Sequence record: ON529852.1
Strand: one strand, 5' to 3'
DNA: 64,000 bases
Below, piece after piece: positions 3,176-37,645 of this stretch (position 1 is its first letter; each line of letters begins with the position of its first letter). The notes below the pieces were generated by a model. It did not search any database. It saw nothing but the letters and a program-made list of their open reading frames with translations, and was not told the DNA's origin. A program made the translations under genes and the position numbers.

Positions 3176-4414
3176 GTGAGCACCTTTGCTGTACCGATCC
3201 TCGCGATCGACGACGTCTACGATCACCCCAACGCTGATCGCCTCTCCATCATCCGCATTCGCGGCTACGAAGCCGTCGCCGGCAAGGCCGAGGACGGATC
3301 GCACCGCTTTGTCAAGGGGGAGCGCATCATCTACGTGCCCGAGGGCGCGGTGGTGCCGGCCGCGCACCTGAAGGAGCGCGGCTACTGGAACGAGGCCAAG
3401 GACATCGGCCTGCTGGCGGGAACCAAGGGCAACCGCGTCAAGGCGATCACCCTGCGTGGCGTGCTGAGCCAGGGCCTGGTGTGGAAGACCGAACCCCTCG
3501 TCGGTGCAAAGGTCAAGGATCGCGCGACCGGAGACATCGTCGCCCAGGTGAATCCGGAGAAGCCTGCGCTGGCGGTCGCCACGGCCGAAGACGGCTCGAA
3601 AACGGCGGTGATGGTTGATTTCGGCGACGACGTCGCCGACTTCTTCGGCATCACCAAATACGACCCGCCGATCCCTCCGGGCCTGGACGGCGACGTCTTT
3701 GGCCTGTTCGAGGCGATGTTCAACTACGACATCGAGAACGCCAAGGCCTTCCCGAACCTGTTCACCGAGGACGACGTCGTCACGGTGACGGAGAAGCTGC
3801 ACGGCACCTTCTGCCGGATGACCTACATGCCCGGCATCGAGCCGCGCGACGATTTGTTCGGCGACGGCCGCGTGGCGATCACCTCCAAGGGCCTGGGCGC
3901 CGACGGCCTGGTGTTCAAGAACACCGCCTTCAATCGTCAGAAGAACGTCTACGTGCGCAATATGCTGCCGCTGGTGGACCACTTCGTCTCGGCCTGCAAC
4001 CAGGACGCCAAGGGCCTGACCGTCCACCTGATGGGCGAGGTTTACGGCGCTGGCGTGCAGGACCTCAAGTACGGCCGAACCGAGGACCAGGGCTTCGCCG
4101 CCTTCGACGTCTGGATCGAGAAGTCGGGCTTCCTGGCCGAGGTCGAGAAGGATTACGCCTGCATCGCCTTCGGGGTGGAGCGAGTGCCGGTCTTGTTCGA
4201 GGGCTTCTACGACAAGGCGCTGATCGAGGACTTCGCCAAGGGCGACACCACGATCGACGGCGCCGAGAACATCCGCGAAGGCGTCGTCGTGACCCTGACC
4301 GGAGAGCAGGACAAACGCCCCGACGGCAACGGCCTGGGCGGCACCCTGCGCCCGATCTGCAAGGTCGTGTCGGAAGCCTACCTGACCCGCAAGGGCGGGA
4401 CCGAACTGCAATAG
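3176..4414 (+). CDS. RNA ligase (DRB0094/Rnl2-like family)
   Basis: N-terminal HPNADRL, YVPEGAVVP and RVKAITLRGVLSQG; nucleotidyltransferase motifs TEKLHG, GEVYG, FDV, REGVVV. Confidence 0.85.
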   Translation: MSTFAVPILAIDDVYDHPNADRLSIIRIRGYEAVAGKAEDGSHRFVKGERIIYVPEGAVVPAAHLKERGYWNEAKDIGLLAGTKGNRVKAITLRGVLSQGLVWKTEPLVGAKVKDRATGDIVAQVNPEKPALAVATAEDGSKTAVMVDFGDDVADFFGITKYDPPIPPGLDGDVFGLFEAMFNYDIENAKAFPNLFTEDDVVTVTEKLHGTFCRMTYMPGIEPRDDLFGDGRVAITSKGLGADGLVFKNTAFNRQKNVYVRNMLPLVDHFVSACNQDAKGLTVHLMGEVYGAGVQDLKYGRTEDQGFAAFDVWIEKSGFLAEVEKDYACIAFGVERVPVLFEGFYDKALIEDFAKGDTTIDGAENIREGVVVTLTGEQDKRPDGNGLGGTLRPICKVVSEAYLTRKGGTELQ

Positions 4415-8374: not shown

Positions 8375-8711
8375 GTGGGGAACTTTCTGTTCCAAGGCCC
8401 GGCAAGCCGGGGTTCCCCATACCCGTGGACGCCCTTAGGCGGCCAGGAGGACTCGTTCGCCAGCGGCGAAGTTGTCGTTGTGTGCTTCGACAGTTGTCAA
8501 AGTTGGATCGTGAGCGGCCGAAACCGCCATGCAGACCCTAGCACTCGCCATTCAATCCCGTCACCAACGTCAATCGATACTGGTCGGCCCCTCAAACCGC
8601 GCCCGTCTCCCATCATAGGAGGGGGATTGGTGGAGCCGACGGGATTCGCACCCGTGTCTTGTCCGTCTGTTTCGTTCTCTCTGCTTCGGTCCGAAGACCT
8701 CCGCGCGACGA
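8375..8711 (-). ncRNA. ssrA: two-piece (circularly permuted) tmRNA, alphaproteobacterial type
   Basis: Acceptor piece ends ACGGGTGCGAATCCCGTCGGCTCCACCA (CCA end at 8628); 36-nt intervening segment; coding piece starts GGGGCCGA at 8591 (G3.U70 Ala identity); tag ORF 8491-8435 reads VEAHNDNFAAGERVLLAA*. The 8375 end is approximate. Confidence 0.9.
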
Positions 8712-9232: not shown

Positions 9233-9970
9233 ATGCTGCACAGTGTTCACGGCACGGTTCCGAAGCTTAAACGATGGTGCGGGCCTTCCGCCATCTCCAT
9301 CATTACCGGCCAGCCCTATCACCACGCTCTGGCGTTGCTTAAGGACGTCAAGGCCGCCAGACGCACCTACCGTGTCACGAAGGCGCCGATCGTCAAAGGC
9401 GCGTCATCGCCTAGCGTGCGTACCGTTCTGAAGAGCCTGGGTTATCTGACGACGCAGCGGGTGACGCCGGCAGGGATCACCGTCGCGGCCTGGCTGGCGG
9501 CGCGGCGCCCCGCCGACCAGTTCACCACCTTCCTGATCGTGGCGGCCAACCACTGGATAGTGGTGCGCGGCGAAGAGGCGTGCTGCGGCATTCTCGGGAC
9601 GCCGACGCCGATCGGTCAGATGAAGTTTCGACGCGGCGTCGTCACGGAATGCTGGGTCGTCACGCCGTCCGCGCAGGGCGTGGCCCCGATCGTGACCGAG
9701 GCGCGCAAGCCGCCCGCGCGGGCGTCGTCCTCCTGGGACCGCAGCGAGGCCCGCGACCGCCGCGCCTTCGTCAAGCTGGCGCGCCAGCACGCCTTCACCT
9801 ACGACATCGTCCGGGATTGCGACACGATCCGCTACATGGAGATCGCGCCCTGCGCCATCTTCCCCAAGGGGCTGGACACCCTGCACCATGACTGGGCGGA
9901 AACCCTGGACCGGGTCCGGCATTGCCTCGATCACCCCGAGGACGCCGCCTCGGGCAGCTACGGCCGCTGA
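9233..9970 (+). CDS. hypothetical protein, N-terminal C39/papain-like Cys-His motif
   Basis: WCGPSAISIITG and NHWIVV segments; followed by a terminator. Confidence 0.6.
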   Translation: MLHSVHGTVPKLKRWCGPSAISIITGQPYHHALALLKDVKAARRTYRVTKAPIVKGASSPSVRTVLKSLGYLTTQRVTPAGITVAAWLAARRPADQFTTFLIVAANHWIVVRGEEACCGILGTPTPIGQMKFRRGVVTECWVVTPSAQGVAPIVTEARKPPARASSSWDRSEARDRRAFVKLARQHAFTYDIVRDCDTIRYMEIAPCAIFPKGLDTLHHDWAETLDRVRHCLDHPEDAASGSYGR

Positions 9971-9977
9971 ACGCAAG

Positions 9978-10010
9978 AGCCCCGACCGAGCGATCGGTCG
10001 GGGCTTTTTC
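9978..10010 (+). terminator. rho-independent terminator (possibly bidirectional)
   Basis: GCCCCGACCGA-GCGA-TCGGTCGGGGC followed by TTTTT. Confidence 0.8.
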
Positions 10011-10035
10011 TCGCGCCATCGTTTGTATCTCGGCC

Positions 10036-10952
10036 GGCGCAGCGTCAGAAGGGTGTGTCGCTAGACCTCCGTCGCGGCGCCAGGGCACTGGGGCTCCCTA
10101 GCACAATCCTCACCTGAACGTGGCTTTCCTCCCCAAGGGGCTGAAGGTGGCGGTGTCCAGGCGACCCTGCGGGGCTCACACGACAAGGCCTCTTCTCAAT
10201 GCCAGGCATAGAAGTAGGCAGAGAGCATAGGTTCTTCCTACCCTCGTCATTGTCGTGGTCCGATTTCCGTCTATCACAGCCTCTGGCTGCCGTCACGCCT
10301 GGTTCCCATTTCTAGGACGGCGTTCCCCTCAGAAGACGGGTCCTGGTGGACCGCGTGCGGCTCTTCAGCGCCTGACGGAACTCGACGACGTGGTAGCCGG
10401 CCGTCTGAACAAGCGTCCCCAAGCGCTCCCAGGGACATGCCGTAGGAGTGTGGCAGGGTCCGCCCCACGCTGTGTCAGGATATACGACAATGAAGAGGAG
10501 GGGTCAATACCGCCTCTGGCGGCCGTCACGCCTAATCGTTCGTCTCGGGCGGCGTTCCCGTCAGGCCTGATTGTCCCCGGCCGAGGTTTGTTCGGGGGAG
10601 CGGTGCGGTCAATCACCCCGACTCACGTTCTCTCGTAACCCGACAGTACGGGCTTAAGCGCGCACGAGCGCTGCAAGGCAGTCACGCGGTGGTCGACTTG
10701 GTGAGGTCATCAAGCCCAGTCGCGCAATCCCACCCTGTATGACGGGATTCACGGCTATCGTCAAGGGGAAACGGGCGCTCTCTCCCGGTCACGCCTCGTC
10801 CTGATGTCTCAGCCGGCGTTCGCTTCAGACAGTGCGGCAGTCTCGGGGCCGTCCCACTCTCCCGCTGTCGTCGGGCCTGTTCCCAGAGGAAGGTCTACCC
10901 CAGGGCAGTCTGCTCCAGAGGCCAGGTCAGGGCGAACCCTGTGTGCTGCGCC
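10036..10952 (-). ncRNA. candidate ~917-nt large structured ncRNA (GOLLD/ROOL-class size and context)
   Basis: Interval between two terminators with no convincing gene; 8-bp end-to-end helix GGCGCAGC/GCTGCGCC; second long-range helix 10889-10897 with 10062-10070; three copies of an internal motif. Confidence 0.65.
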
Positions 10953-11003
10953 TAAGGACCTTCAGCAAGATTGAAGCCTACCAGAACAAACCGAAGCGGG
11001 CAA

Positions 11004-11036
11004 AGAAAAACGGCCCCGATCCGAAGATCGGGGCCG
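11004..11036 (-). terminator. rho-independent terminator of the TROVE gene
   Basis: CGGCCCCGATC-TTCG-GATCGGGGCCG followed by TTTTTCTTT on the minus strand. Confidence 0.8.
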
Positions 11037-11094
11037 CATCGTTCTTTACGCGGCAGCGTAATTCCGCGAACGGATTACGAATACCCGTATTGGA

Positions 11095-12483
11095 TCAGCC
11101 GCCGACGAGGCCGTCGTCGAACTCCATCGCCTCGACCTCACGGATATAGCGCAGGACGCTCTCCGAGAAGCCGTCGATGTGGACCCATCCGTTGCCGTAG
11201 CCGATGCCGTTTTCATAGCTGGCGACGTTGATCATGTAGGCCTTGCCGGCCTTGGGCGCCGGCAGTCGCCCGCCACCCATCCCGCTGCTCAGCGTTCCCG
11301 ACGCCTGTTCGTCGGTGATGACGATCAGGCGGTCGCAGGCGAACTGACGGTTCACCACGTCCACGGCCTGGGCCAGGGCGGTGCCGTTGTGCGGCTGCGA
11401 ACGGATCACCGCATCGACCCCCGCCATGCCCTTGCGGGCCGGGACCTCGACCAGACCGTTGGAGAAGGTCACGACGCGCACGTCGCCCGGCAGGATCGCC
11501 GCCAGCGTCGCCGCCGCATCCATCCGGGTCAGGTCCGACTTTCCGGACAGTTTTTGCCGCATGGAGTAGGAGACGTCGACCATGACCACGGTCGAACCCT
11601 TCAAGGGTTCGGCCTGATCAATCGTCGCCACGAGGGCGTCGTCCAGCGCCCGCTCGAACGAGGGCGCATAACGCGCCGCCGCCGTGAAGCGGAAGGGCAG
11701 GACGCGGTCCGCGCCCTTGCGCGCGCGGATCGCAGCATTGACCAGATCGCGGTCGACGCCGGCCTGCTCCATGTTGCGCAGGTTGCGCAGCAGGGCGAGG
11801 TAGCCCAGTTTGCCGTCGGCCAGCAGACGCGTGAACGTCGCCTTCTTGTCGGCGCCGCCCGACAGGGCGACTTCCCAGGTGTCGGGCGCCGTCAGTTCAT
11901 TGTCGACCAGCTTCTTGTAGAGGACCTCGCGGTCGTCGTTCGCCGGCTTGGCGTGCGCCAGAAACAGAACGTCGCGCAGGCGCACGGACTTGGCCCGGTC
12001 GTACTTGGCGATCTGATAGGCGTCGAAGTTGCCGAAGGCCAGCGACAGCCCCTTCTTCACCTGAGCGGACAGCGGCGCCTTCTTGCCGTCGGCGCGCACC
12101 GGGTTGAGCGCCCAGTAGAGAGCCAGGAACTCGCTCAGTTCATCGGCGCGCTGGATGACGCGGGCGATGGTCAGCGACACCAGGGCCGAGCCGGACCCGC
12201 GTTGGGCCAGAACGACGAGCAGCAGAAGGGGGACGTGACGCAGCTTGGCGTCCTCACGCGCTTCAATCGCGATCTGGGCGAGGGTCTCGACCGGAACTTC
12301 CTTGGCGAGGCTCTGGATACGGTCGGCGATCGACACGCCGCTCTCGTAGAAATTGTCTTCCCACAGCAGGCAGGACATGACCGACCGGCGCAGGGCCTGG
12401 GTCTTGGTCATCCGATCGGCCGGTGCGCCTTCATGGGTGCGCGCGGTGGTCGTCTTGGGCTTTGCGTTGATCGACGCCATAAT
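11095..12483 (-). CDS. rsr: Ro60/TROVE-domain RNA-binding protein with C-terminal vWA domain
   Basis: Start probably ATG 12483 (MASINAKP, GGAGG SD). THEGAPA, LRRSVMSCLLWEDNFYE, KYDR, TWE, YLALLRNLRN, RVLPFRF; vWA MIDAS DVSYSM...T...VITDEQ. Confidence 0.92.
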   Translation of the reverse strand: MMASINAKPKTTTARTHEGAPADRMTKTQALRRSVMSCLLWEDNFYESGVSIADRIQSLAKEVPVETLAQIAIEAREDAKLRHVPLLLLVVLAQRGSGSALVSLTIARVIQRADELSEFLALYWALNPVRADGKKAPLSAQVKKGLSLAFGNFDAYQIAKYDRAKSVRLRDVLFLAHAKPANDDREVLYKKLVDNELTAPDTWEVALSGGADKKATFTRLLADGKLGYLALLRNLRNMEQAGVDRDLVNAAIRARKGADRVLPFRFTAAARYAPSFERALDDALVATIDQAEPLKGSTVVMVDVSYSMRQKLSGKSDLTRMDAAATLAAILPGDVRVVTFSNGLVEVPARKGMAGVDAVIRSQPHNGTALAQAVDVVNRQFACDRLIVITDEQASGTLSSGMGGGRLPAPKAGKAYMINVASYENGIGYGNGWVHIDGFSESVLRYIREVEAMEFDDGLVGG

Positions 12484-12508: not shown

Positions 12509-12675
12509 GACCAAGAGGTCGGGGAGGAACAAGCACGAGCCCGGTTCATCCGGTGCGTCTACCACTTCCGCCACCTGCACCAGAGATGCAGGCCAGGACT
12601 TGAACCTGGATACCCTTGACGGGCGCCGGCTCCAGCGAAGTATAGGCTCGTTACGCCATCCCCGACCTCTTGGTC
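12509..12675 (-). ncRNA. Y RNA, YrlA-like unit 1
   Basis: 17-bp terminal helix; TGGCGT/GTTCC internal motif; permuted tRNA domain: CCAGGTTCAAGTCCTGG T-arm, loop-closed TGCA acceptor-like stem, GTGGCGGAAGTGGTAGACGCAC D-arm. Confidence 0.8.
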
Positions 12676-12682
12676 AGTGAAC

Positions 12683-12825
12683 TCCGGCGCTCTGGTAGGA
12701 AGGCGGGGGAACATGCGCGACCGGATGCGGGATCGAACCGCGAGACCGGGGGTTTGAATCCCGGCTTATCAACCAGCGATGTAACCGACCGCTCTCACCA
12801 CCCGCCCACCAACCAGGGCGCCGGA
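12683..12825 (-). ncRNA. Y RNA-like unit 2 (non-permuted tRNA-like insert)
   Basis: 14-bp terminal helix; TGGTGA/GTTCC motif; inner hairpin with AUUCAAA loop followed by GCGGTTCGATCCCGC T-arm. Confidence 0.7.
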
Positions 12826-12833
12826 AAAGCAGA

Positions 12834-12987
12834 AACATGAAGGCGGCGGGGGAATAAGCGACCCCACTCTTTTTAGGCGTGCTACCGTTACACCAAACGC
12901 CGCTAGGCGACGTTGCGGAATCGAACCGCTCATCCCGCTCCACATGCGATGAAAGTGACGTCTATCGCCACCCACCGCCTTCATGTT
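12834..12987 (-). ncRNA. Y RNA, YrlA-like unit 3
   Basis: AACATGAAGGCGG terminal helix; TGGCGA/ATTCC motif; GCGGTTCGATTCCGC T-arm, AACGTCGC-CTAG-CGGCGTT closed acceptor-like stem, GGTGTAACGGTAGCAC D-arm. Confidence 0.8.
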
Positions 12988-12995
12988 GTTGGCTC

Positions 12996-13170
12996 AGAAG
13001 CGTGTGGTGGATCGACAGGGGAACCGGCGGAAAGGCGCCGTTTGGACTATCGTTCTACCAACTGAACTACCGCCGCGCCCGAAGGTGCGCCGAGTGGGAT
13101 TCGAACCCACGACCTACAGTTTGCGAAGAAGGCCTCTCCCTCACCACCTGTCGATCCGCCACACGCTTCT
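12996..13170 (-). ncRNA. Y RNA, YrlA-like unit 4
   Basis: ~23-bp terminal helix; TGGTGA/GTTCC motif; GTGGGTTCGAATCCCAC T-arm, TTCG-capped acceptor-like stem, GTAGTTCAGTTGGTAGAAC D-arm. Confidence 0.8.
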
Positions 13171-33626: not shown

Positions 33627-35335
33627 AGGCGCCACTTCGCTCCCTGCATGGTGATGATCTGGCGCTGGCCGTTGTGCAGGGTCACGACGTGGCTGTGCGA
33701 CCACGACGAGAGGCCCTTGTTGTAGCCCATGTCCAGCTTGGAGGTGGTGCCGGAGACGAAGGCCCCGTCGATGATCTGACACGAATGGGTGTGCCCGGTG
33801 GTCGACTTGGCGCCGGCGCGGGTGAACTGCCGGGGATTGCCGCGCGCGCCATTGGCGCCCAGGTGCCCGTGCATGCCCTTTTCGATGTCCATCACCTGGA
33901 AGGACTCGTCCTCGCGCAGGAAGCGCACGCCTTCGCAGGCGATGTCGTCGAAATAGTCCGTCAGGACATATTCGAACACCGAGAAGTCGCCGTCATGTTC
34001 GCGGATCGCCTGGTAGGCGCGCCGCTGGCAGGCCAGGAAGAACTCGGCGTTGCGCGGATCGTGGCGATAGTCGGCTTCCTTGAGCCAGCGCTTCAGCGCC
34101 AGGTCATGATTGGACTCCACCACGACCGTCTTGCAGAAATCCCGTCGCGTGGATTCGATGAAGGACGCCACCTCGCGCAGTTCCGTCTCGACGGAGTCGG
34201 CGCCGGCCACGAACAGGGCGAACATGTGGTGGGGATCGCGCAGATTGTGGTGGTTGCGCGCCTGGAAGTCGCAGACGTCGTGATAGAACTGGTACGACGG
34301 CCGCAGCGCGTCCAGGATCGGCATCGGATCGCTCTCGCCCGAGGTCGCCCAGCGCCGGCCGGACCCGCGCCCCTTGGCGTCAAGCGGGTAGAAGCCGAAG
34401 CAGGACTTCGCCACGATCGGGTCGATCTGGGCGACATGGAGGTCGCCCCAGTTGATCGCCGCCACGCGGTGACGGTGGGTGATCAGGGGCGTGTTGCCGC
34501 GCGCGGACTTGTCCGCGCGCGTCTGCACCCGGATGTCCAGGTCCATGAAGGAGCCGTCCGGCTCGGCGATCAGGTGGCGGCAGAAGAACTCGCCCTGGTC
34601 GTTCATCTCGACCAGCAAGGCCGCGACTTCGTGGTGGAAGGCCGCCTTGATGCCGGCCTTCTTCTTGACGTAGTTGGGCAGGGTGATCGAGCCGGTCGTC
34701 ATGTTCTGCTTGGCCGGGGCGTGCTTCATCGTCGGGACCGACTGAAGCTGAACCTTGGCGTGCGGGAAGATGCCCCAACGATGCTTGGTGTAGGTTTCGA
34801 ACCCGCTGAGCGGCGTGACCGCCGTCGGCAGGGTGTTCATCTCGCCGCAGTAGTCGATCTTGTCGCCCAGGCGGATGCGCTCGTTCGAGATGTAGGGCTC
34901 GATGCGGAAGTGGTAGTAGGGCTTCTGCTCGTTTCGACCCTTGTCATCGCCGTCTTTGGCGTGGCCCCGATACATCTTCTTGTTGTAGGTGTAGCCCGAG
35001 ATCATGATCTGGCACGGGCCGTCCTTGGACAGATGATCGCGATAGGCTTCCAGGTTGGTCAGGAAGTCCTCATGGATCGACGTCTCGGACTGGGCCGAAG
35101 TCAGGATGAAGCGCTGCACGGTGCCGGGCGCGACCACGATCTTCTTCGGCTCGACCGGCGGGATGTAGCTGAACGGGTCGCGGTGCACCTTGTGCAGGCG
35201 CAGTTGCAAGGTCGAGCGCGCCACGCCGTAGTGACGGCTGAACTGACGCTGGCCGCCCATCTCGGTGACGATGCGGTCGAGTTCCTCGGGCGAGACGGAG
35301 TCGAGGTCGAAGGACCCCTTGGCTTCAGCCGGCAA
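33623..35335 (-). CDS. HTH plus calcineurin-like metallophosphoesterase protein
   Basis: N-terminal FSRHYGVARSTLQ HTH; WGDLH, HD, SNHD, MHGH, GHTH metal motifs. Confidence 0.75.
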   Translation of the reverse strand: MPAEAKGSFDLDSVSPEELDRIVTEMGGQRQFSRHYGVARSTLQLRLHKVHRDPFSYIPPVEPKKIVVAPGTVQRFILTSAQSETSIHEDFLTNLEAYRDHLSKDGPCQIMISGYTYNKKMYRGHAKDGDDKGRNEQKPYYHFRIEPYISNERIRLGDKIDYCGEMNTLPTAVTPLSGFETYTKHRWGIFPHAKVQLQSVPTMKHAPAKQNMTTGSITLPNYVKKKAGIKAAFHHEVAALLVEMNDQGEFFCRHLIAEPDGSFMDLDIRVQTRADKSARGNTPLITHRHRVAAINWGDLHVAQIDPIVAKSCFGFYPLDAKGRGSGRRWATSGESDPMPILDALRPSYQFYHDVCDFQARNHHNLRDPHHMFALFVAGADSVETELREVASFIESTRRDFCKTVVVESNHDLALKRWLKEADYRHDPRNAEFFLACQRRAYQAIREHDGDFSVFEYVLTDYFDDIACEGVRFLREDESFQVMDIEKGMHGHLGANGARGNPRQFTRAGAKSTTGHTHSCQIIDGAFVSGTTSKLDMGYNKGLSSWSHSHVVTLHNGQRQIITMQGAKWRL

Positions 35336-36059
35336 AATACATCTCCGCCTTGGCGTGGGGGGCGGTCAGGGCCTTGCGCCAGTCCCAGACGTACCAGGCG
35401 TAGGAGAAGCGCGGGCTCTTGGACTCCTCGCCCTCCTTCTTCTCGACCCAGACCGGGCGGAAGCGCAGGGTGATCTTGGCGATGAAGGCGGGGTGATCGA
35501 TCAGGTGGGCGCGGCCCTTGGCCGTGTCCCACTCATGGCGCATCAGCATGGCGACATAGCCCTGCTCCGCCTCCATCAACTCCAGCGCCTTCTCGACCGC
35601 CAGAACGGCTTCCTTGCCGTAGGGTGGGTTGGTGATGATGCAGTCCGGACGGAAGCCCAGGGCCGCCTCGACCTCGGTCATGGAGATCGGACGGGGCGCT
35701 TCGTTTTTCGTGACTCCACCGTCCAGCGTCGCCTTGTCGATCGTGCGCTCCCAAGCCGCCACGGCGATCTCGTGGGCGTCGCCGTCGGCGTAGATGTTGA
35801 AGAAGTCCAGCATCGCCGTCGGGTCGAGGCCCTCGTAGCGATGGATGTCGCTGGTGGCTTCCAGCCGGCACAGCGGGCCGATCAATCGGGAAATGGCGCC
35901 GTTGCCCGCGAAGGGCTCCCAGAAGGCCATCTGCTCCAGGTCGTCCTCGACCACGGAGATGAAGGCTTCGGTCGCGCGGGCCGGGGTCGGGTAGAAGTCC
36001 AGGGCGTTGCGGGGATAGTTCGTACCCCCCAGCATGGAGGGGTCTTGACGCGTGGTCAT
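35325..36059 (-). CDS. amino (N6-A/N4-C) DNA methyltransferase-like protein
   Basis: DFYPTP, WEPFAGNG, SD, IITNPPY, RF...YAWYVW. Confidence 0.8.
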   Translation of the reverse strand: MTTRQDPSMLGGTNYPRNALDFYPTPARATEAFISVVEDDLEQMAFWEPFAGNGAISRLIGPLCRLEATSDIHRYEGLDPTAMLDFFNIYADGDAHEIAVAAWERTIDKATLDGGVTKNEAPRPISMTEVEAALGFRPDCIITNPPYGKEAVLAVEKALELMEAEQGYVAMLMRHEWDTAKGRAHLIDHPAFIAKITLRFRPVWVEKKEGEESKSPRFSYAWYVWDWRKALTAPHAKAEMYFAG

Positions 36060-36209
36060 TCAGCAGGCCGTTTTGATGGAGGGGATGCGCGGTCGGAGCG
36101 CTTGCGGCCTTCTTGGTCTCACGATTAACCACGAACGTCAAGATTTACGTCAATGGGAGTCAGGTGCGTTGACACACTTGCATCCGGATCGACCTTGGAT
36201 TATCGGTGA

Positions 36210-36615
36210 TGCTTCGAGAAGACGACGAGGATCGTCGAGCGTCTCCTGGCCGCGCACGGGTCAGGATCAACGCCGTCGTCTCAGGGAGACGCGGACCTAA
36301 GGCGATAGGGCTCCGCGTCAATGGGTGAAGTGAGGAACGGACGGCGCATCCGTGTTGGAGCCATAGTCCAGGTGGGCGATTCACTGCCTTACCCGGACCG
36401 AGTCGCGGTAATCGAATGCTGCCGCGTGACGTGACGCCGACCGACAGTAGAGGATGGCGTGACCTAAGGGGAGAGGCCCATGCAGGGCGGACCGCGTCGG
36501 ACGCGGCCGCCGACTAGCCGGAGGGGCTGCACACCCGATGGACAGGATCGCCCCGCCCGCGAAGAAGCGAATGGGGGATGACGCCGGCGCAGCCGAGACA
36601 GACGATGCGCACGAA
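36210..36615 (+). ncRNA. candidate ~400-nt structured RNA
   Basis: Helix-dense, no credible gene; helices GCGTCTCC/GGAGACGC and AGACGACG/CGTCGTCT; shares the ACGCCG...GGCGTGAC motif and 3' tail with the 10-kb RNA; ends are approximate. Confidence 0.5.
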
Positions 36616-36645
36616 AAAGGCCCCGATCGCAAGATCGGGGCCTTT
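36614..36645. terminator. bidirectional terminator between two convergent ncRNA candidates
   Basis: AAAAA-GGCCCCGATC-GCAA-GATCGGGGCC-TTT; same 10-bp stem as the terminator at 11011-11034. Confidence 0.8.
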
Positions 36646-37233
36646 GACGTCGTGGCGGGGTCCTCGGTTTTCATCGTCGCGGCCGGCGTGCCTTTCGCTA
36701 AACGATCCCGCATCTCTTCGCACCGGGCGGACCCGGACTACTTTACCGCCGGCCCCCATACGGTGAACCTCGAAGGCAGAGCCTCTAGCGCATCCTACCG
36801 GCGCCATAGCGGTGTGTGAGGAAGGGGTTCTCACCTCACGATCAGGGAAGTGGACGACCGGGGAAACGTCCCGCCGGCCCGATCGTCCGGGCATTGCGCC
36901 CTTGAAAGCGAAACGGCAGGAGGGGACTGGCCCGTCCTGCCGCTCTATGACCTGGGGAGTGGCGTACCTGTCCCGGCGGTCGGTGCGGTGGCGCATGGTC
37001 CGAAAGACCAGAGGAGCCGCGTGATCCGGGGTAACTCGAAGGTCCCGCGCCTCACCCGCTGCTGTTTATTCGCCCCGACATGCTGATCCGGGACTACTAG
37101 AACTGGTTGCCCCGTCGTTCCAGCCGGGGACTGCGTGTGGCCGTCGCCAATACCGCCTTGGTCCGTTCCAGGAGCCACCCTGCCTGAGCAGTCGCCAGCG
37201 AAGCCGATACTGAAAGCGCCTCACTGAGAAGAG
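36646..37233 (-). ncRNA. candidate ~590-nt structured RNA (ROOL-like size)
   Basis: Strong promoter upstream and terminator downstream; no credible gene; two AGUA/GAA loop-E hairpins; long-range helix 37195-37202 with 36694-36701. Confidence 0.6.
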
Positions 37234-37238
37234 GGCGC

Positions 37239-37279
37239 ACTATAAGCAGGGTTTCGACTTTTGTCAATAACTACGGCAG
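37239..37279 (-). promoter_or_regulatory. sigma70-type promoter with CTGCCGT-N5 element
   Basis: CTGCCGT-AGTTA-TTGACA, 17 nt, TATAGT. Confidence 0.75.
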
Positions 37280-37285
37280 AAAAAT

Positions 37286-37645
37286 CTAACGCCCGAAGCG
37301 GAAAAAGCGGCGCAGGGGGGATTCCGTCTCGCGCTTGTATTGCTCGGCGTAGTCGGCCTTGCGCTTCTTGGTCTCTCCGACCGTGTCATGGCAATCCGCC
37401 CAGGCGCCGTGAAGATCACGGTCGTAGGCGGCCTTGTCTTCGTCCAGGCGCGGCTGACCCGGCGCGGGGCGCGCGGGCACGACCGGCTCGTCCCGGCACT
37501 CGGTGATCGAGTCCGGGTAGAGGCTGTCAGGGGACAACAACACCGTCGGGCTGCTTGCGCAGGCCGTCAGCAGCAGGCTGGTCGCCAGCAGGAGCGCCGC
37601 CAGTCGGGCGGGCTTGCGCTTCCGCGCGTCGGTCGAGGGCTTCAT
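37286..37645 (-). CDS. o-spanin (Rz1-like lipoprotein)
   Basis: Start re-assigned to ATG 37645; lipobox LLLTAC; Pro-rich; overlaps the 3' end of the i-spanin. Confidence 0.75.
   Translation of the reverse strand: MKPSTDARKRKPARLAALLLATSLLLTACASSPTVLLSPDSLYPDSITECRDEPVVPARPAPGQPRLDEDKAAYDRDLHGAWADCHDTVGETKKRKADYAEQYKRETESPLRRFFRFGR

Follow-up and report, generated by a model that had tools for sequence, protein, structure and literature searches.

K36, a candidate structured non-coding RNA of Brevundimonas phage Kabachok, and the repeated 60-nt module relating it to a second gene-free region

Introduction

The described RNAs and RNA signals closest to the element considered here belong to several classes. 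Species 1 and 2 RNAs of phage T4 are small stable RNAs located inside the phage tRNA gene cluster, while nut/put-type antitermination sites and inter-gene processing hairpins represent cis-acting signals of phage and rRNA operons. GOLLD and ROOL are large ornate non-coding RNAs, frequent in phages or prophages and in the vicinity of tRNA genes (PMC5737381), and bacterial Y RNAs are usually encoded near the gene of Ro60 protein, within about 4 kb and on the same strand (PMC4201824).

Here, we address the 1.2-kb gap between the DNA methylase gene and the lysis cassette of Brevundimonas phage vB_BpoS-Kabachok (ON529852.1, 356 kb, Dolichocephalovirinae), a jumbo phage, studied within a stretch of 64,000 nt further referred to as the window (record position equals window position plus 186000). 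The gap houses a block designated K36, which an earlier sequence-only reading had proposed to be a plus strand RNA, shorter than but paralogous to a large RNA encoded on the minus strand near position 10,000 (the 10-kb region). Both regions turn out to carry copies of one module of about 60 nt.

K36 resembles GOLLD and ROOL by comparable context and size class, but it is composed of a short repeated module, belongs to one phage subfamily with another host phylum and another base composition, and has no match among Rfam models, be it at the gathering threshold (window) or at E up to 10 (two regions). At the gathering threshold, nothing in the whole window matched except the permuted tmRNA and two tRNA genes, out of three that ARAGORN detects; at E up to 10, regions 36000-37320 and 9950-11120 gave terminator look-alikes and a skipping-rope match of sub-threshold quality only, and no model of known self-cleaving ribozyme classes matched in either of them. 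The likeness to T4 species 1 and 2 RNAs lies in non-coding nature, co-location and probable co-transcription and processing with phage tRNAs, although to our knowledge no repeated-module build is described for the T4 species, unlike K36. With nut/put-type signals the likeness is that of architecture only (repeated short elements, single-stranded boxes, covarying hairpins, placement in the leader and spacer parts of long transcripts that are partly untranslated), whereas the module has no sequence or model match to them, and the K36 unit stands alone and ends in a terminator. The literature searched yielded neither a transcript map nor any description of ncRNA for these phages; matching no Rfam family and having no description in this literature, the 60-nt module is undescribed.

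Genomic surroundings of K36

The gap and its borders comprise the following features:

35325-36059, minus strand: DNA methylase gene, the left border of the gap
36060-36163: conserved promoter-like block of the methylase, 99% identical and similar in phiCbK
36164..36211, plus strand: hypervariable spacer between the methylase promoter region and the RNA, 60% identity between Kabachok and Bambus with flanks at 98-99%
36178-36206, plus strand: weak sigma-70-like candidate promoter, hexamers read by eye from the sequence (TTGCAT 36178-36183, 17-nt spacer, TATCGG 36201-36206)
36212..36645, plus strand: K36, candidate RNA of about 430 nt, a conserved structured non-coding block delineated by conservation, compensatory pairs and folding
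36538-36819, plus strand: annotated CDS KABACHOK_03830, judged spurious
37286-37543, minus strand: o-spanin gene of the lysis cassette, the right border of the gap

The promoter-like block of the methylase is confined to about 100 nt from the methylase start, and the 48 nt of the spacer lie exactly between this promoter region and the conserved RNA block. The TTGC..N..TAT skeleton of the plus strand promoter candidate is retained in Bambus, and the promoter scan did not pick the candidate up; a promoter at 36178-36206, situated in the least conserved 48 nt, is thus only weakly predicted.

The right half of the gap, about 36650-37240 on the minus strand, corresponds to a convergent “590-nt RNA” with a near-consensus sigma-70 promoter at 37267..37239 (TTGACA, 17 nt, TATAGT), which ends at the hairpin 36619-42 with a 5-T run on the minus strand. 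It is conserved in Gurke and Kikimora, and the tRNA arrays of CcrSC and CcrBL9 preserve an 85-nt core of it. Identity to Bambus is 43% in an indel hot spot at approximately 37050-37100, and the sub-threshold skipping-rope match (36674-36844, E 0.015), containing large insertions, falls into this RNA, outside K36.

Conservation, folding and coding potential

The K36 region is present in five phages, and their comparison is that of two lineages, the Kabachok group and the Bambus group (Bambus and Marchewka). Between them, 36212-36615 is identical by 98.0% (396/404), to be compared with 95.8% for the methylase, 89.8% for the A1-like gene, approximately 91-92% for the spanins and 88% for the minus strand 590-nt RNA. 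Four of the eight substitutions constitute two compensatory replacements of A-U by G-C, one at 36410:36420 (A-U in the Kabachok group, G-C in Bambus and Marchewka) and one at 36591:36606 (A-U in Kabachok, G-C in Bambus); one further substitution, C-G to U.G at 36409:36421, is tolerated on the plus strand only, since on the minus strand it would be a C.A mismatch. The sample, two lineages and eight substitutions, is small and points one way. Consensus folding of 36212-36615 with RNAalifold gave five compatible variable columns and two breaking pairs for the plus strand versus four compatible and five breaking for the minus strand, where a sixth break is located at 36648, in the flank of the terminator. 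As for thermodynamic stability, minimum free energy of the plus strand amounts to -203 kcal/mol vs -183 +/- 6.6 in shuffles (z = -3.1), and the minus strand has z = -4.5, so both strands beat their shuffles, the minus strand even more so; the description of this interval as helix-dense is borne out in either direction.

The absence of a convincing gene, likewise assumed from the letters, holds as well. ORFs overlapping 36052-36996 have no Pfam or PHROGs match, and the sole annotated CDS, KABACHOK_03830, spans the terminator and remains unannotated in Bambus and Marchewka, where two in-frame stops interrupt it. That K36 nevertheless encodes one or more small proteins might be supposed from ORFs of 33-110 codons available on both strands, one of which directly follows the module and one of which is the annotated CDS, yet these ORFs lack family matches, their products are Arg/Pro/Gly-rich as expected for random frames at about 65% G+C, and the pattern of substitutions tracks helices rather than codons. 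We consider a coding function to be next to negligible in probability.

The site of K36 in Gurke is reduced to approximately 145 nt (L010, 2356-2500), and in Kikimora it is occupied by a plus strand ORF for 280 aa (L003, 1655-2494) having no family match and unrelated to the ORF adjoining the 10-kb array. The position of K36 is a variable slot among close relatives; being missing in the first phage and replaced in the second, K36 is dispensable there.

Composition of K36 and the 60-nt module

Five parts can be distinguished within K36:

36280..36319, plus strand: degenerate module-like element seen in the consensus fold, CUCAGG followed by an 8-bp stem 36288-36295/36312-36319
36404..36426, plus strand: hairpin P0 with 7 bp and a 9-nt loop, directly 5′ of the canonical module and containing a compensatory pair (36410:36420)
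36423..36481, plus strand: canonical copy of the 60-nt module matching model R1 over its full length (39.7 bits, E about 4e-9)
36579..36615, plus strand: terminal module variant (“3′ tail”) composed of UGACG, stem 36587-36591/36606-36610, loop starting with GCCGAGA and A-run
36616..36645, strand not assigned: terminator hairpin with stem 36619-36628/36633-36642, common to K36 and the convergent minus strand RNA

The covariance model R1 was built from 20 aligned copies of the module. Its elements follow in the order of a variable hairpin, YUGASG, the 5-bp stem P1 with a loop starting with (G)CCRAGA, GAC and a small hairpin, the latter having a stem of 5-6 bp and a purine loop of AGA or GAGAGAG type. 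In K36 this order is reproduced by UGACG, P1 at 36434-36438/36456-36460, GAC and a purine-loop hairpin at about 36468-36479. Matches to R1 fall on one strand only in every locus checked, and the minus strand of 36423-36481 gives none, in agreement with the suggestion that K36 carries a variant of a repeated module and that it does so in the plus orientation. Since canonical copies score 58-83 bits, this copy with its 39.7 bits has to be considered divergent; it shows 72.5% over 80 nt to the reverse complement of module 3 of CcrColossus.

The helical nature of the module is supported by several counts. Its helices are paired in 90.5% of cells vs 76.9% in shuffles and 28-49% in slid controls, and 9 of 11 pairs change on both sides, the value reached by 0 of 500 shuffles, with the reservation that the covariation alignment (A4) was fitted to model R1 and favours the structure. 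A hand-anchored count, which is independent of A4, found all five pairs of P1 in 33 of 35 copies, each position being represented by two to five pair types. Moreover, 15 G.U cells of the module helices turn into mismatches on the opposite strand, which fixes the sense of the RNA, and for K36 this sense is plus.

The more upstream element, 36280-36319, in which the 8-bp stem encloses a short inner stem, can be aligned with the start of copy 1 of the 10-kb module. This alignment is not significant (21/300 shuffles), and the element is regarded only tentatively as a third, degenerate copy of the module.

The 3′ end of K36

The 3′ end was supposed to parallel that of the 10-kb RNA, and at the level of letters it does: GCCGAGA..ACGATG occurs at exactly two sites in 64 kb, 36592-36607 (plus) and 10017-10034 (minus), with 0.03 expected, and the local alignment of 36579-36644 (plus) with 10047-9975 (minus) has a score of 29 vs 14.9 +/- 1.9, which 0 of 300 dinucleotide shuffles reach. 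Much of this score is supplied by the terminator hairpin. Once it is removed, the best alignment between K36 and the 10-kb region is not significant (21/300 shuffles), and sequence identity alone would not carry the claim.

Put side by side in RNA sense, the tails of six lineages (K36, the 10-kb array, Bajun, Gurke, phiCbK and Rogue) have one common order: YUGASG, stem, loop beginning with CCRAGA, A-run and terminator hairpin. The sequence of the stem varies among lineages, the Kabachok/Bambus compensatory pair included. Since the architecture is the same and the stems covary, the “shared 3′ tail” is a terminal version of the module with the terminator replacing the small hairpin, even though the K36 tail scores only 3 bits with R1. 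The similarity is not limited to the terminator-proximal part either, because the internal 60-nt module is also common to K36 and the 10-kb region. Outside the modules, comparison of these two regions detected no similarity or common global fold. Thus the idea of K36 as a paralogous member of an RNA family survives in part: orientation, module, terminal module-terminator and covarying helices speak for it, and no shared fold of large RNA was detected. The K36/10-kb family is defined by the repeated module, not by a shared global fold.

The terminator requires similar specification. The same hairpin lies at the end of both convergent RNA candidates, as had been proposed, but the stem is followed by five T on the minus strand and by three on the plus strand (four in Bambus), so that 36619-36642 appears to be primarily a terminator of the minus strand RNA and a weaker one for K36. 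The scan tool listed this hairpin on neither strand. Its 4-nt loop (36629-36632) is reverse-complemented in Bambus and Marchewka (GCAA versus TTGC) with an unchanged stem, as if the hairpin tip had been flipped.

The recognition of the tail as a covarying terminal variant of the module lends comparative support to both the plus strand reading and the family link. On balance, 36212-36645 is probably a real non-coding element acting as a folded plus strand RNA, and in this case most likely an independent transcript of about 400-430 nt; this estimate derives from sequence comparison.

The 10-kb array and its Ro60 neighbour

The counterpart region on the minus strand contains:

10275-10335, 10508-10567 and 10771-10831, minus strand: three canonical module copies, direct repeats detected by R1 and adjoining the phage Ro60 gene
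9975..10051, minus strand: paralogous terminal module plus terminator at the array end (R1 at 10008-10051, 20.9 bits, E 7e-4)

The canonical copies score 71.9, 69.7 and 60.5 bits, and the tail hairpin is located at 9979-10004. Directly after two of the modules, sigma-70-like -35/-10 pairs are found, one of them being conserved in a distant contig: copy 2 is followed by TTGACC, 17 nt, TATATC, an arrangement that recurs behind a module of contig L143. These pairs escaped the promoter scan because their last base is not T. With such promoter pairs inside, this region resembles a series of tandem units more than a single 917-nt RNA.

The ORF next to the array (11095-12480, minus strand), annotated as “hypothetical protein, gp540”, is an orthologue of Ro60/Rsr (TROVE 7e-12, vWA_Ro60). 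With such a neighbour it is attractive to regard K36 as a Y-RNA-like partner of the phage Ro60 (Rsr) protein. YrlA/Y RNAs (RF02553) are also structured RNAs that phages can encode and that are connected with RNA quality control. The 10-kb array immediately follows the TROVE/Ro60 gene on that gene's strand, and four module copies contain GGCGAACG, a short segment fitting the motif GNCGAAN0-1G (PMC4201824). This motif, however, has six fixed letters and is inexact in most module copies, the module lacks the tRNA-like T/D-arm domain, and YrlA gives no match at E up to 10 in 36000-37320 or 9950-11120. K36 itself is encoded on the opposite strand about 24-25 kb away from the Ro60 gene, and only the 10-kb array lies at the distance usual for Y RNAs. 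Besides, no module is present near the Ro60 genes of CcrColossus, Xanthomonas phage Sopo and Ralstonia phage RsoM2USA, while phiCbK, Rogue, BL10 and Bajun possess the module and have no Ro60 gene, and a separate YrlA-like match sits upstream of the Ro60 gene of Kabachok. The identity of the module as a Y RNA was rejected on its absence beside other Ro60 genes, its presence without Ro60 and the missing YrlA match, and a partnership of K36 with Ro60 seems to us hardly credible.

The YrlA-like match mentioned (13048-13118, minus strand) is a sub-threshold one with 27 bits and E 0.002, displaying T-arm and D-arm features; weak tRNA-like matches are also situated upstream of the Ro60 gene, at 12718-12791 and 12906-12979, and at the equivalent place CcrColossus has an annotated 68-nt “tRNA-Gln”. 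Region 12600-13150 (minus) is probably the true Y RNA locus of the phage.

Among other features of the window, a permuted two-piece tmRNA (8435-8690, minus strand; RF04321, 57 bits, above threshold) is located between tRNA-Met and tRNA-Cys. It is missing from the GenBank annotation, and a tmRNA of this kind occupies the corresponding position in contig L143. Since an annotated RNA ligase gene (3176-4414, plus strand) is also situated a few kb from the tRNAs, tmRNA and Ro60 gene, RNA repair and quality control emerge as a theme of this genome section.

Distribution of the module and its tRNA context

Every phiCbK-like phage checked gave blastn matches to the module, with one to four places per genome. 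Kabachok-group genomes have two such places, and counting with the covariance model adds the third canonical copy, the K36 element and the tails, all within the two loci of the window. A loose 15-base DNA pattern was uninformative, giving more than 120 single chance matches in viral contigs. The stricter pattern retrieved from viral contigs only the known isolates plus one new contig, from metagenomes one true module, and from bacterial genomes no module, with no match above 29 bits. None of the collections searched yielded the module outside Dolichocephalovirinae phages.

In relatives, what directly follows a module is tRNA-Cys, tRNA-Met, a small ORF or a sigma-70-like promoter. The order in phiCbK, Rogue, BL10 and Bajun is tRNA-Cys, terminator, tail, module, sigma-70-like promoter and methylase, the promoter reading towards the tail and the methylase being encoded on the other strand. 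The interval between methylase and tRNA is taken up in CcrColossus and CcrPW by three to four modules, the last of which ends about 7-9 nt before tRNA-Cys. The IMG/VR contig L143 has at least seven modules on a single strand, starting about 200 nt from a divergent methylase orthologue (68% identity) that adjoins the first of them, and here modules directly precede tRNA-Cys, tRNA-Met, two small ORFs and a TTGACC promoter. The distance from module to tRNA-Cys varies from about 1 to 9 nt (L143, Colossus and PW), and to tRNA-Met it is about 10 nt. Units of different phages compared pairwise have only modules and terminators in common, with the exception of phiCbK, Rogue and BL10 among themselves. 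As to the ORFs behind modules, 1344-2127 of L143 contains two modules, behind each of which come approximately 20 nt with a ribosome-binding site and then a small ORF (56 and 87 codons), and in CcrPW an ORF for 197 aa likewise follows a module; ORFs behind modules in relatives belong to no informative family.

The short distance, from a few nt to about 20 nt, between copies and the tRNAs or ORFs behind them, together with a small hairpin of 5-6 bp and a 3-nt loop, could be understood as a sign of phage-specific or hairpin promoters operating at the DNA level, and K36 would then be a cluster of promoters. Two blastn places per Kabachok-group genome and one to four elsewhere are, however, far too few for a promoter class. 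In addition, P1 pairs bases about 20 nt apart and covaries, the G.U pairs are strand-specific, and several copies are followed by ordinary sigma-70-like -35/-10 pairs. Genome-wide promoter identity of the module was ruled out on copy number and covariation, and there is little to recommend the view of K36 as a promoter cluster, which we rate as highly doubtful.

Another DNA-level possibility is suggested by the proximity of the methylase, which the module region adjoins in phiCbK, Rogue, BL10, Bajun, Colossus, PW and L143. The A1-like protein neighbouring the methylase is a proposed transcription factor (PMC3556154), the minus strand of K36 folds well too, and K36 might represent a DNA-level or minus strand regulatory region of the methylase/A1-like operon. 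Yet the covariation of the stems and the G.U pairs single out the RNA-sense strand, the same module occurs beside tRNAs and ORFs far from the methylase, the methylase owns the conserved promoter-like block 36060-36163, and Gurke retains the methylase without K36. We hold this explanation improbable, and the folded plus strand RNA remains the preferred one.

Inversion of the replication block

In CcrColossus, CcrPW and L143, the array starting from the methylase leads on the same strand into tRNA-Cys, tmRNA and tRNA-Met. K36 adjoins the methylase and points away from it as in these relatives, but no tRNAs stand behind K36, because the replication block has been inverted. Relative to CcrColossus, the replication-gene block of Kabachok from Ro60 to methylase (window ~11000-36650) has the opposite orientation, so that the array abuts the Ro60 gene and K36, the methylase-proximal unit, abuts the lysis cassette. 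The tails 9975-10047 and 36579-36646 form an inverted pair 26 kb apart, enclosing the 10-kb module array, the replication block and K36. Thus, the similarity of K36 and the 10-kb region also has a genomic explanation, namely that the methylase-proximal end of the array was split off by inversion.

The same rearrangement could have left K36 as a functionless relic of the array, the likeness of tails being due only to duplication at the breakpoints. The inverted position of the tails would fit this scenario, as would the lack of K36 in Gurke and Kikimora, which share the inversion. It is difficult to reconcile with a relic, however, that K36 is more conserved than the adjacent protein genes, that half of its substitutions are compensatory, and that the architecture of the tail is kept with different stems in phages having no inversion. 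A functionless K36 is therefore considered improbable as well.

Possible role of the module

Where an ORF follows a module at about 20 nt, or a tRNA follows it at a few nt, the module must be transcribed through, and modules consequently act in or on the transcript. In the scheme we favour, the K36 RNA would begin immediately right of the region with the divergent methylase promoter and run up to the hairpin that it has in common with the convergent minus strand RNA. It would comprise three modules of about 60 nt, the degenerate, the canonical and the terminal copy fused to the terminator, and inversion of the replication block may have separated it from the rest of the array in the 10-kb region. 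The modules are suggested to be RNA-level recognition signals in long untranslated transcripts, which in the leader of the tRNA-tmRNA operon could bind a processing or stabilising factor or participate in antitermination. Among these roles we infer processing or stabilisation as first, antitermination as second and self-cleavage as third. High conservation of the detached K36 suggests that modules function apart from tRNAs as well, for instance by retaining the same factor, and K36 may persist as a stable module-bearing RNA engaging this factor in trans.

A bolder version can be formulated as well, where the module would be a new active class of RNA, self-processing or polymerase-modifying, which punctuates the tRNA-tmRNA operon, and K36 would be a trans-acting triple-module RNA. 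We regard this as speculative and rather unlikely. If the module is a processing signal only, it would be of specialist interest; if it proved catalytic or polymerase-modifying, it would amount to a new RNA class. Clear helices, invariant unpaired bases and tandem layout are in any case typical of RNAs that have a particular partner or activity.

Long gene-free stretches of giant phages get filled with doubtful ORFs in the course of annotation. Two such stretches of Kabachok belong to one conserved, strand-specific family of RNA modules, which is linked to the tRNA-tmRNA cluster in every phiCbK-like phage checked, among them phiCbK itself, a model phage for which laboratory tools are available. 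The module thus offers a concrete handle on the expression and processing of long untranslated phage operons.
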